64,000 bases of DNA, taken from Hyaloraphidium curvatum SAG 235-1 (Eukaryota > Fungi > Monoblepharomycota). The number at the start of each line of letters is the position of its first letter. The stretch's first letter is position 1. The DNA lies in the NCBI GenBank assembly GCA_025558095.1, contig JAIVFI010000035.1, forward strand, positions 1-64,000, read 5' to 3'. The notes below the pieces were generated by a model that was not told the origin of the DNA, made no database searches, and worked only from the letters and a program-made list of their open reading frames with translations. Made by a program: the position numbers and the translations under genes. Shown piece after piece: positions 55,555-59,595 of the stretch.

Positions 55555-56525
55555 ATGGACCTCAAATCCGTCTCCTACTCGGTCTCTGGACGCGTTGCGA
55601 CCATCACGCTCAATCGCCCCGAGCGCATGAACGCGATTGACGGCCGAATGCCGGGCGAAATCCGCCGCTGCGTCGAGGCGGCCGATTCTGACCCGAACGT
55701 TCACGTCGTCGTGCTTCAGGGGGCTGGAAGCTCCTTCTGCGCCGGATACGATCTTAAACAGGCCGCGGAGGGTTCCGGGCAGGGTTCGGGCACTCAGGAG
55801 ATGCCGTGGGATCCCGTAGTCGACTACAAGTGAGAAGGGAGGGAAGTCTCGCCGCGTCAAAAGCGACTGAAGCGCGCCGTTCCGCCAACAGGATGATGGG
55901 TCGCAACACTGCCGACTTCATGACCCTGTTCCGGTGCAGCAAACCGACCATCGCAAAGGTACAGGGTTACTGCGTTGCTGGAGGCTCGGACATTGCGCTG
56001 TGCTGCGATATTGTGATCATGGGCGAGTCTGCTCGGATAGGATGTAGGTTGTCCTCCCGCTCTCCTTCTCCATCGAGATCTCGAACATCGGATGCTGCAG
56101 ACCCACCGGCACGCGTCTGGGGAGTACCCTCGACAGGGATGTGGGTGTTCCGGATCGGTGCCCAGGCCGCGAAGCGGATGCTCTTCACGGGGGACCTCGT
56201 GGACGGCAAGGAGGCCAAAGAACTTGGCATCTGCCTCAAGTGCGTGCCGGATTCGGAACTGGACGAAACCGTGGACGCGCTGGCCAAGCGCATCGAAGGC
56301 GTTCCGCGCAACCAGCTGGCCATGGTGAAGATGATGGTCAACTCTGCTTTGGACAACCAGGGGCTCGCGACGACGCAGCAGATGGCGGTCCTCTTCGACG
56401 GGATCGCGAGGCACACCCCGGAGGGCGTTTACTTCAAGAAGAAGGCGGAGCAGGAAGGATTTCACGCGGCCGTCAGGGAGCGGGATTCGGGGAGCTGGAT
56501 CGCGAAGGGCGTGTCCAAGCTCTGA
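55555..56525 (+). CDS. Enoyl-CoA hydratase/crotonase family, PTS1 (SKL)
   Basis: VATITLNRPERMNAI, FCAGYDL, KPTIAKVQGYCVAGGSDIALCCD, KRMLFTGD; two introns; ends GVSKL*. Confidence 0.92.
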
Positions 56526-56718
56526 CAACTTCAGGTTCAACGCCTTGGGGTTTGGCCGAAATCGGATGAGACATGCATAGCCTAGTAGCATTGTTTCTGT
56601 GTTAGCCATGGCAAGATTTACATCTAGCTGGTGGAACAGAGCAGCATTGGTGCTCGGCCTTGGGGGCCGGAGGAGGTGGAGAGATTTGTCAGCATCCGCA
56701 AACTCTCCGGCCCATAAA

Positions 56719-58066
56719 ATGTCGGCCAGCTCGGCCGCCCGCCGTGTTCATCTCACGGCGACCAAATGGTCGCTGTTGAACATCGAAGGACGCGTCCCCC
56801 GGCCGCAAATCCTCCTTCCGACCCCTGCATCGCCCAGCGTCGCGCGCTGTTTCGCGAGCCGCAAGATGCCGATTACCCTGAACCGGGCCTCCAAGGCCGT
56901 CGTTACCAAGCCCATCTCGCAGCGGATAGAATGGCTCTTTGATGTGGCTGCCGTCAGCTCGGCCGAGTACTGCAGCCCCGCGTCCTACGTGAGCCGGAAG
57001 AGGTACCGCTCCAAATACCCCACGGAGATCCTCGCGCTCAAGTGCATGGACGGGCGGATCAACCTCGCCGTGGCGACCAACACGCCGCCGGGCATCTTCC
57101 AGCCGTTCCGGAACCTCGGCGGGCGGTTCCACCTCGGCTGGCCCCATCTCGGGGAGACCATCGTCGAGGCCGTCGACCGGGTCGTCTCGGACGGCCGCCG
57201 CGTGATCATCATCGCCACGTACCATTTTTCGAAGGGGGACGTCCACCGGGGTTGCGCGGGGTTCAACTATGACACGGACGCCGCGCGGAGACACACCTTC
57301 GAGATCAAGTCGCAGATCGAAGAGGTCTTTGGCGGGACGGAGCACTCGACCGTCTATCCCCTCGTCTGCGGGTTCGAAACGGTGTGTAGTGTTCGTCCTG
57401 GCTGTTTGCAGCCGAAGCTGACTGCTGTCTAGGACGAGGACGCCCTGATCCTCCACGGCAGGGACGGCGACGTGCTCAACATGGCCGATCTCGACCCCAA
57501 CACGGACCGGGACACCCTGCGGGCGCGGCTGGCGACCCTCCTCCCCGACGCCCACAGGTCGATGATCGACGACCTCGTCCCCGTGCTGGCGGGCAACCTG
57601 GAGCACGTTGCCGAGATGCGGGCGAGGACGCGGACGCTGGACGTGGAGCACCGCGAGTGGGCGATCTGCATCGGGCGTGGCTTCGACTGGTGGGCTGTTC
57701 TTGGAGGGCATGTGCGAGCCTTGGTCTGATCATGGATTTCGTAGGCTCCACGCGCCAAACACGGCGCTAATCGTGGGCCCCTACTCCCCGGATCTCGACG
57801 AACCCATACGGAGGGCCGCCGGCATCATCAAGTCCAACATGGACGGCGGCCGCATCCCGTCGGACGGCTTCCTGCTGCTGGCCAGCTCGCCGTACGACGA
57901 GGTCGGCGTGGACAAGGCGCGGGCCGTGATCAAGTCGCGGTTCCTGCTGGACTTTGCCGCGGGCGTGATCCGCAGGAGCTTCCCGGAGCTGGCGGACAAG
58001 ATGCACGTGCGGACGTGCGTGATGAGCTGGGCGACGCGGTCTCTGGAGATCGAGCCGCATGAATGA
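56719..58066 (+). CDS. CsoSCA-like (carboxysome-type beta class) carbonic anhydrase with N-terminal extension
   Basis: KCMDGRIN and YHFSKGDVHRGCAGF zinc-ligand motifs, FRNLGGRF, GFET/DEDALILHG; introns 57382-57432 and 57690-57744. Confidence 0.8.
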
Positions 58067-58100
58067 TGTATATCCTGGTTCTATGTCTTTAATGTGAGTT

Positions 58101-58162
58101 GAAGCCGAAGTGGAAGCCGAAAGCCGAAGTGATGAGCTGAAGTGGGAAGCCGAAGTGATGAG
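58101..58162 (+). repeat. Clustered AAGCCGAA(GTG) motifs upstream of RACK1
   Basis: Four copies of AAGCCGAA, three followed by GTG, within about 60 bp and about 100 bp before the RACK1 ATG. Confidence 0.5.
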
Positions 58163-58259
58163 TCGCCCTTTTCTAACCTCAGCGTTTACGGGCTTTGTTA
58201 GAGACCCGCCCCGCCAGCCCGAATCCCCTCCAACTCGCCCCTCCTACCCAATCCCGACC

Positions 58260-59595
58260 ATGGACCAGCTCGTGCTCCGCGGCGTCCTCAAGGGCCACTC
58301 CGGCTGGGTCACGGCCATCGCCACGACCTCGGAGAACCCCGACATGATCCTCTCGGCGTCGCGCGACAAGACGGTCATCGTGTGGAAGCTCACCCGCGAC
58401 GGCGGCGCCGAGGACGCCGAGTACGGCCGCCCGTACAAGAGCCTGCGCGGGCACAACCACTTTGTCCAGGACGTCGTGATCTCGTCCGACGGCGCGTTTG
58501 CGCTGTCGGCGTCGTGGGACAAGACGCTCAGGCTGTGGGACCTGTCGAGCGGGCAGACCACCAGGAGGTTCATCGGGCACACCAACGTGGGTGTTTTGGG
58601 AGGCAGGGAGGGGGGCCGGGGATGAGGACGTTTCCGACCGTGCCGAACCGGGCGGGACGCGTGCCCGCGCGTTGGGGAAGCAAGAAACATTCAATCTGTC
58701 AATCCACTGAGGCTTGGGCGCCGCTGGAGGGGACGGACGTCGCCGGCGGGCGGTCGTTCCCGTCGGACGGGCGCAGTTTTTGCCGGAACGGGGTCTGACA
58801 CAACGGTTCCACGCACAGGACGTCCTCTCGGTCTCCTTCTCGGCCGACAACCGCCAGATCGTCTCGGGCTCGCGCGACAAGACGATCAAGCTGTGGAACA
58901 CGCTCGGCGAGTGCAAGTTCAACATCACCGAGGACGGGCACACGGAATGGGTCTCGTGCGTGCGCTTCTCGCCCAACCCCGCCAACCCCGTCATCGTCTC
59001 GGGCGGCTGGGACCGGCTCGTCAAGGTGTGTTGTGGCGTCGCGTCGCGGGGCATCCCGCTCGTATTGCATGCGCATCGTGCTCACGGCCTGTGCCATTTC
59101 CAGGTCTGGGACCTGACCAAGATGAAGCTCCGCACCAACCACATTGGCCACACGGGCTACATCAACACCATCACCATCTCCCCCGACGGCTCGCTCTGCG
59201 CCTCGGGCGGCAAGGACGGCATCACGATGCTGTGGGACCTGAACGAGGGCAAGCACCTGTACTCGCTCGAGGCCGGCGACGTCATCAACGCCCTGTGCTT
59301 CTCGCCCAACCGGTACTGGCTGTGCGCGGCCACGGCCAAGGGGATCAAGATCTGGGATCTGGAGAGCAAGAGCGTCGTGGACGACCTGCAGCCCGAGTGG
59401 ACCGTGGGTTGCCGTCGCGGCGCGTGCGTGCGTGTGACAAGTCGCTGACGTTTCGCCAACCCACAGGAGGAGGAGGGCCGCAAGTCCTCCCGCCCGCAGT
59501 GCATCTCGCTCGCCTGGTCGGCCGACGGCCAGACCCTCTTCTCGGGCTACACCGACAACGAGATCCGCGTCTGGGCCGTCACCCGCTCGGCCTGA
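58260..59595 (+). CDS. RACK1: RACK1/Asc1/Cpc2 WD40 ribosomal scaffold protein
   Basis: [72 protein letters not shown]; three introns. Confidence 0.97.
58620..58712 (+). ncRNA. Intronic box C/D snoRNA guiding 18S rRNA 2'-O-methylation
   Basis: Lies in the unusually long RACK1 intron 1 (about 58588-58818). Box C-like ATGAGGA at 58622, box D CTGA at 58707-58710, preceded by TCAATCTGTCAATCC, the exact complement of conserved 18S GGAUUGACAGAUUGA. Confidence 0.85.

Follow-up and report, generated by a model that had tools for sequence, protein, structure and literature searches.

Besides the CsoSCA enzymes of carboxysomes, a second variant, CsoSCA2, has been described as common outside carboxysome loci (Sutter, Kerfeld, Scott and co-authors, Front Microbiol 2022; PMC9164163), namely a compact carbonic anhydrase (CA) of about 350 amino acids (aa) with a 40-aa N-terminus of two helices, shorter loops and all the catalytic residues. 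Sulfuricella and Nitrospira are named among its hosts and the family is also found in heterotrophs, the hosts listed in that study being bacteria only, with no mention of eukaryotes. Regarding fungi, a 2026 review of their CAs considers the alpha and ordinary beta classes only and does not mention CsoSCA (PMC13514724), and nothing was found in the literature searched on CsoSCA in fungi or in Hyaloraphidium, nor on Hyaloraphidium in connection with carbonic anhydrase. The gene considered here, designated copy A, is located at positions 56719-58066 on the forward strand of a 64,000-nucleotide (nt) stretch from Hyaloraphidium curvatum SAG 235-1 (Monoblepharomycota; positions 1 to 64,000 of contig JAIVFI010000035.1, assembly GCA_025558095.1), hereafter the window. 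Taken as a whole explanation, copy A would encode a zinc beta-CA of the compact, non-carboxysomal CsoSCA2 form and of bacterial origin, a reading to which a probability of about 0.82 is given. What is new is a eukaryotic member of CsoSCA2, a clade already known from bacteria.

Read from the DNA, copy A is made of three exons with 413 codons and two GT..AG introns (Table 1). The first-pass annotation, made from the letters of the window alone, had described a spliced eukaryotic gene for a carboxysome-type carbonic anhydrase, horizontally acquired and probably mitochondrial, and its motifs, coordinates, two canonical introns and second methionine at 56866 all proved correct on re-reading. As for splicing, a transcript contig of 3648 nt from a public run covers 56300-57380, 57432-57688 and 57744-58078 and omits exactly 51 and 55 nt at GT..AG, so that copy A is transcribed and spliced as modelled; since introns are removed in this contig, the run, labelled only 'RNA?', does contain RNA. 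Exon 1 lies within the contig, and the translations of all three exons are 100% identical to the 413-aa protein held at NCBI as 'hypothetical protein DFJ74DRAFT_690285 [Hyaloraphidium curvatum]' (P0001), which was the reference for all whole-protein steps. Copy A is a resident nuclear gene with host-like codon usage: the guanine-plus-cytosine (GC) content at third codon positions is 0.90 in its exons vs. 0.87 in the last exon of the neighbouring gene, the GC content is 0.55 in its introns vs. 0.67 in its exons, and the GC content of the gene is in line with that of its flanks. On the same contig, it is preceded by an enoyl-CoA hydratase gene (ECH_1, E 6e-25) and followed by a WD40/RACK1-like gene.

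By its ligand motifs, its profile matches and its predicted fold, the copy A protein is a member of the CsoSCA subclass of beta-CAs and not an ordinary beta-CA of the HxxC type. Instead of that arrangement, the spacing is H-x9-C, with nine residues between H169 and C179 vs. 10 in the CsoSCA of H. neapolitanus, and the motif Y-H-F-S-K-G-D-V-H-R-G-C-A-G, which begins at residue 168, aligns to YHFSTSDPTHSGCA of the CsoSCA structure 2fgy, as the exon 2 motifs do to GHAERY...GDGFD of the same structure. In an alignment of 62 diverse relatives, used as a profile (A1), the invariant columns are C109, D111, G112, R113, H169, G178, C179, T221, N276, H294, E296 and G302, a set that takes in the Asp-Arg dyad and all three zinc ligands. 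With the Pfam family CsoSCA_cat (PF20686; gathering cut-off 21.5), P0001 scores 24.9 bits (E 1.6e-5); it matches 2fgy at E 0.004 over an alignment spanning the His...Cys motif, and the A1 profile reaches 2fgy at 8.5e-16 and 8thm at 1.9e-15 vs. 1.9e-3 for the best ordinary beta-CA. With Pfam Pro_CA (PF00484), P0001 gave no match, and Pro_CA_2 appeared only at E 0.18, with exon 1. When the exons were scanned singly against Pfam and NCBIfam, exon 1 remained below threshold (CsoSCA_cat at E 0.085, TIGR02701 at E 0.006) and exons 2 and 3 gave no match; exon 1 alone nonetheless finds its relatives at E 1e-72 and better, far beyond chance.

The AlphaFold2 model built on A1 (predicted local distance difference test, pLDDT, 88.4; predicted template-modelling score 0.84) has a two-domain fold, with a catalytic domain and a duplicate devoid of ligands. 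In Foldseek, it is matched best by the CsoSCA structures 8thm, 9g4t and 2fgy (E about 1e-16, template-modelling score 0.62-0.65 over about 390-400 alignment columns); the red-algal beta-CA 1ddz, which has two domains, comes next at 5e-7, and single-domain beta-CAs are at 1e-3 or worse. The model strands and helices at 298-410 align with the C-terminal domain of the CsoSCA structures. The membership in the CsoSCA subclass that the first-pass annotation had read from the ligand spacing is thus upheld by the CsoSCA_cat match and by the lead of CsoSCA structures in both the profile and the Foldseek searches. In the proposed mechanism, the conserved core (residues 65 to 413 approximately) would comprise two short N-terminal helices, the catalytic beta-CA domain and a second, ligand-less beta-CA-like domain; one zinc would be held by C109, H169 and C179, the D111-R113 dyad would position the zinc-bound water, and the duplicated domain would stand in for the partner subunit of ordinary beta-CAs. 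Such an enzyme should interconvert CO2 and bicarbonate, an activity that we infer from the conserved residues, the fold and the gene neighbourhood in bacteria.

Within the CsoSCA subclass, copy A groups, on sequence comparison, with the non-carboxysomal CsoSCA2 and not with the carboxysomal CsoSCA. Its core, residues 65-413 (349 aa), aligns end to end with bacterial proteins of 346-359 aa and is 60-72% identical over its whole length to proteins of a bacterial clade with Sulfuricella and Nitrospira among its members, whereas the identity to the carboxysomal structures found by Foldseek is only 17-19%. CsoSCA_N, i.e. the N-terminal domain with the Rubisco-binding peptide and the hook motif, was not matched by P0001 in Pfam, and only two short helices (66-85 and 87-99 in the model) precede the catalytic domain. 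Searches of the whole genome for RuBisCO_large and for bacterial microcompartment shell proteins gave no match, which extends to the genome what had been noted for the window. A carboxysomal function was therefore rejected, because the N-terminal domain, Rubisco and shell genes are absent. Of the earlier designation as a carboxysome-type enzyme, the CsoSCA subclass stands, but the kin are the non-carboxysomal CsoSCA2 (PMC9164163) and not the carboxysomal enzymes.

The best matches of copy A are bacterial, 60-72% identical and mostly from Pseudomonadota, and the genomes of at least 422 bacterial species encode a relative; the hosts include Thiobacillus, Hydrogenophilaceae, Sulfuricella, Accumulibacter, Thiodiazotropha, Nitrospira and Desulfuromonadales. 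The ESM Atlas clusters are 100% Bacteria. Among the representatives of clusters at 50% identity, short fragments of high identity are mostly bacterial fragments or chimeras; their reading as intron-split eukaryotic genes was rejected for all but P0218, the only eukaryotic one. The open reading frames (ORFs) flanking the relatives in 80 named bacterial loci were clustered: genes of the Proton_antipo_M/DabA type (DAB-type inorganic-carbon uptake) adjoin in 20 of them, in genera from several families and classes, and SulP transporters in 11, Nitrospira and Hydrogenophaga being among the hosts. No carboxysome genes were seen near the loci of bacterial relatives examined. Neighbours that transport inorganic carbon fit a role in inorganic-carbon handling, hence a carbonic anhydrase activity. 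DAB-type genes also adjoin csoSCA2 at L005:9360-17062; in Thiodiazotropha, an IS110 transposase lies between csoSCA2 and the DAB-type genes.

Copy A is one of three CsoSCA2-type loci of the Hyaloraphidium genome, all with the ligand motifs, the others being copies B and C (Table 1), which score 24.3 and 28.0 bits, respectively, with CsoSCA_cat, above the 21.5-bit cut-off. Between the copies, the identity is 48% for A and B and 52% for A and C; to bacterial members, it is 54-57% for either of B and C. In copy C, a single GT..AG intron of 62 nt stands behind GRGFDW, in the same codon and with the same phase as intron 2 of copy A. The public model at the copy B locus (P0164, KAI9002830.1, 704 aa) is the same as B for 343 residues and then splices to downstream sequence; it is probably a fused gene model. 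The genome also holds three ordinary Pro_CA genes (G000:C17:531367-531876, C5:811360-811818 and C44:25153-25611), so that the CsoSCA2 copies supplement the usual fungal set and do not replace it.

The family extends to other eukaryotes. In run SRR23967301, Logan contigs of one eukaryote (L004 and L095) carry an A-type protein (P0024) and a C-type protein (P0407), both as uninterrupted ORFs. P0024, the sister of A (65% identical), adjoins an RBR-type E3 ligase, and the Atlas clusters closest to this ligase are 100% eukaryotic; next to P0407, the sister of C, lies a Peptidase_M8 gene, and P0028, from metagenomes, groups with P0024. As orthologues of both A and C occur in this organism, the A/C split predates the split between it and Hyaloraphidium. 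A NUDIX protein is also found among the neighbours on the SRR23967301 contigs, and Hyaloraphidium itself has a large Peptidase_M8 (leishmanolysin-like) family, with 21 matches to one query over many contigs. No other named fungus was present among the best 120 matches of A, of P0024 or of C, and lower-ranked members may exist. In the cryptophyte Cryptomonas curvata (MMETSP1050), two CsoSCA2-type members, P0010 and P0218, are known from transcriptome contigs only. The N-terminal extension of one Cryptomonas transcript is long and charged; P0218 begins with what resembles a signal peptide, and a metagenomic relative (P0065) is 77% identical to P0218.

Ahead of the core, copy A carries an N-terminal extension of 64 residues, bacterial kin such as P0003 beginning only about 6 residues ahead of the core. 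These residues include 11 Arg/Lys, 13 Ser/Thr and a single acidic residue, for a net charge of +10 and a largest hydrophobic moment of 0.60, and residues 1-47 are disordered in the AlphaFold2 model, with pLDDT below 50. The residues R43-C44-F45, followed by A46-S47, resemble an R-3 type mitochondrial processing site. The composition, the disorder in the model and this motif point, with somewhat better than even odds, to a mitochondrial targeting of copy A, where the enzyme would supply bicarbonate to biotin carboxylases and to carbamoyl-phosphate synthesis. The extension of copy B has 32 residues and is acid-free and Pro-rich, and that of copy C is acidic, with 88 residues and a net charge of -5; copy C is probably cytosolic. 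The pattern of the three extensions suggests different destinations, with A as the best mitochondrial candidate. A dual localisation of copy A through two ATGs, as envisaged by the first-pass annotation, is a matter of speculation.

Several observations weigh against one part or another of the reading as a CsoSCA2-type CA of bacterial origin, and they have to be set beside the competing views on activity, residence and compartment, and on history. Regarding the family assignment, the single-protein score with CsoSCA_cat barely exceeds the cut-off, and TIGR02701, the carboxysomal equivalog, is reached with 15.5 bits vs. a cut-off of 241 bits, over exon 1 only. Regarding activity, CsoSCA2 is described as 'yet to be studied', no member having been assayed (PMC9164163), which leaves room for a protein with the fold and zinc site of a beta-CA but another main substrate, e.g. 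for the hydrolysis of carbonyl sulfide (COS) or CS2, or for a mainly regulatory one; many bacterial hosts do oxidise sulfur (Thiobacillus, Thiodiazotropha, Sulfuricella) and the COS hydrolase 3vqj is a weak match of beta-CA type to the A1 profile. This is nevertheless improbable, considering that all CA catalytic residues are invariant, that the nearest relatives of solved structure have carbonic anhydrase activity, that the recurrent bacterial neighbours are genes for inorganic-carbon transport (DAB-type, SulP) and not sulfur genes, and that heterotrophs also have the family (PMC9164163). Even less can be said for bacterial contamination or an assembly chimera, for which the nearest relatives, all bacterial, could be invoked: the removal of two spliceosomal introns in RNA refutes it, and eukaryotic genes on both sides in a contig that measures 551 kb in the public assembly, the host-like codon usage and the two further paralogues on other contigs, one with an intron, leave it with practically no chance. 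As to the compartment, there are three in-frame candidate start ATGs (56608, 56719 and 56866); a start at 56608 would add 37 further residues and lengthen the basic extension, a start at Met50 gives a protein of bacterial length, and the transcript contig is uninformative on the 5' end, as it runs on upstream into the neighbouring gene. Copy A could then work in the cytosol or another compartment, the extension being a linker or an annotation artefact and translation beginning at Met50, and this view retains a sizeable share of the probability, somewhat short of even odds; it has against it the strongly basic, nearly acid-free composition rich in Ser, Thr, Ala and Arg, the disorder of the extension in the model and the R-x-F|A-S motif just ahead of Met50, as well as the mitochondrial beta-CAs reported from other fungi, i.e. 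Sordaria CAS2 (PMC2664464) and Magnaporthe MoCA1 (PMC8891501).

Regarding history, a bacterial origin by horizontal transfer has good support; one acquisition into the fungal lineage, then two duplications, with a separate transfer to cryptophytes, is the preferred scenario, its single-transfer part being only moderately supported. In the mixture-model tree, (A,(P0024,P0028)) has a support of 96/72, (B,(C,P0407)) of 96/96 and the bacterial clade, P0010 included, of 98/94 (the starred branch), and the three groups join in an unresolved trichotomy; when named bacteria are included, P0010 stands beside Hydrogenophaga and Burkholderiales in the tree, with the long-branched fungal-type copies in a basal grade. 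From such topologies it could be argued that two or more transfers took place, the lineage of A, P0024 and P0028 and that of B, C and P0407 having entered separately from similar bacteria, the more so as the six fungal-type sequences never make one clade in free trees, only a fork or a basal grade, as A shares 66-72% identity with bacteria and no more than 48-52% with B and C, and as the approximately unbiased (AU) test gave p 0.079 and 0.084 for narrower groupings. The introns cut both ways: those of A and C stand at identical codon and phase, which favours common descent, but B has none, neither intron site is interrupted in P0024, P0028 or P0407, and the A and C introns both begin with GTGGGC and show no other likeness in sequence comparison. 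With uninterrupted orthologues, a common A/C intron needs several losses or arose by parallel gain, the latter being how separate transfers would account for the shared site. Moreover, a single diagnostic column, T313, unites the fungal-type copies. Against separate entries, which on the whole appear doubtful, one clade of all six is not rejected by the AU test (p 0.235), all six lie outside the starred bacterial clade, and it is one and the same bacterial subgroup that A, B and C resemble most; besides, B and C are long branches, so that a basal grade is to be expected as an artefact. In an earlier tree, B grouped with Ectothiorhodosinus P0173, which was put down to long-branch attraction, and the last tree was made without P0173. 

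In the single-acquisition scenario, the gene would have passed from bacteria to the ancestor of Hyaloraphidium curvatum, the nearest living relatives being Pseudomonadota of the Thiobacillus / Hydrogenophilaceae / Burkholderiales kind, and would afterwards have gained host codon usage, spliceosomal introns and the 5' extension, the three paralogues arising most likely by duplication. The horizontal acquisition put forward by the first-pass annotation holds as regards bacterial origin, but it is not a lone acquisition, copy A being one of three paralogues with orthologues in at least one other eukaryote. Likewise, the phylogeny it had called for to find the donor gave bacterial affinity, with Pseudomonadota as nearest kin, but no donor at class level: none could be named, because the base of the Pseudomonadota-dominated clade, where the fungal-type copies diverge, is unresolved, and the donor would at most be a stem relative of that clade. 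The Cryptomonas copies were probably acquired separately, given the placement on the bacterial side.

Table 1. Features of copy A in the window, and loci of copies B and C in the Hyaloraphidium genome
Feature	Position	Strand	Remarks
Upstream in-frame ATG	56608..56610	+	37 codons before the annotated start, no stop between; ORF 56599-57432
Exon 1	56719..57381	+	codons 1-221; N-terminal extension, two-helix element, most of the catalytic domain
N-terminal extension, residues 1-64	56719..56910	+	absent in bacterial relatives; basic, Ser/Thr/Ala-rich
Second in-frame ATG, Met50	56866..56868	+	start here would give a protein of about bacterial length
C109-M-D111-G-R113	57043..57057	+	putative first zinc ligand and beta-CA Asp-Arg dyad; aligns to CADGR of CsoSCA 2fgy
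H169...C179	57223..57255	+	putative second and third zinc ligands, long CsoSCA-type spacing
Intron 1	57382..57432	+	51 nt, GT..AG, phase 0, CTGAC branch-like site
Exon 2	57433..57689	+	codons 222-306 and the first two bases of Trp307; last part of the catalytic domain, linker helix, EHREW / GRGFDW motifs opening the second, zinc-less domain
Intron 2	57690..57744	+	55 nt, GT..AG, phase 2, inside Trp307
Exon 3	57745..58066	+	last base of Trp307, codons 308-413, TGA stop; C-terminal beta-CA-like domain without zinc ligands
Copy B	contig 41, G000:C41:6031-7170 (L007:1516-2670)		uninterrupted 384-codon ORF; own C-terminus aligns with the family
Copy C	contig 19, G000:C19:11035-12224 (L008)	-	public protein P0406, 440 aa

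In the immediate surroundings of copy A, the transcript contig is unbroken from the enoyl-CoA hydratase gene over a 193-nt spacer into the CA gene (window 56300-56718), which may reflect overlapping UTRs (untranslated regions) or read-through between the two genes, contigs being unable to separate the two. On the other side, the contig of the CA gene stops at 58078, 12 nt beyond the stop codon, and the depth of RNA contigs is zero at 58082-58162, across AAGCCGAAGTG repeats (window 58082-58260). The RACK1-like gene that follows is very highly covered, and one of its contigs starts at 58228 right behind Illumina adapter letters, a start that hints at a 5' end of the RACK1 mRNA near 58228.

Beyond the gene itself, a spliced and expressed three-copy fungal family, together with separate cryptophyte copies, carries a carboxysome-related CA lineage into eukaryotes, and provides a clean case of transfer from bacterium to eukaryote, after which introns were gained, the gene duplicated and the product probably retargeted. 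It also offers both material and a reason for asking what sets CsoSCA2 apart from ordinary beta-CAs, the mechanism being expected to be the ordinary interconversion of CO2 and bicarbonate. A more daring view would be that a single uptake by an early zoosporic-fungal lineage furnished differently targeted CAs, with A in mitochondria, C in the cytosol and B elsewhere, and that cryptophytes independently did likewise with a plastid- or secretory-targeted copy; though unlikely as a whole, it would imply, if true, that CsoSCA2 has a property lacking in ordinary beta-CAs, e.g. activity as a monomer or a different regulation, for which eukaryotes recruited it repeatedly.

Compared with the ordinary beta-CAs of fungi (Nce103, CafA-D and CAS1-3; Pro_CA), copy A belongs to the same superfamily, with the same kind of ligands and the same expected reaction, but the former have HxxC, a single domain of about 200 aa that needs dimerisation and vertical inheritance in fungi, and copy A matches Pro_CA models only at E 0.1 or worse. 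With the carboxysomal CsoSCA (the former epsilon-class CA; 2fgy, 8thm, 9g4t), it has in common the zinc site Cys-Asp-Arg...His-(9-10 residues)-Cys and the H-x-E-R/W and G-x-G-F-D motifs opening the second domain, whereas the N-terminal domain of about 100 residues is missing, the loops are shorter and there is no cso operon. The Cryptomonas copies are of the same clade, also eukaryotic and with N-terminal extensions, though P0010, unlike the fungal-type copies, is placed by the starred branch among the bacteria, close to Hydrogenophaga / Burkholderiales. The closest likeness is with the bacterial CsoSCA2: both have the core of about 350 aa, the two-helix N-terminus, the association of an active and a defunct beta-CA domain, all the catalytic residues and no carboxysome genes nearby, and copy A is 60-72% identical to the members from Thiobacillus, Hydrogenophilaceae, Sulfuricella, Nitrospira, Accumulibacter and Thiodiazotropha. 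Unlike these, it is a eukaryotic nuclear gene with two spliceosomal introns, host codon usage and a 64-residue N-terminal extension, and it is accompanied in the same genome by its diverged paralogues, three copies in all.

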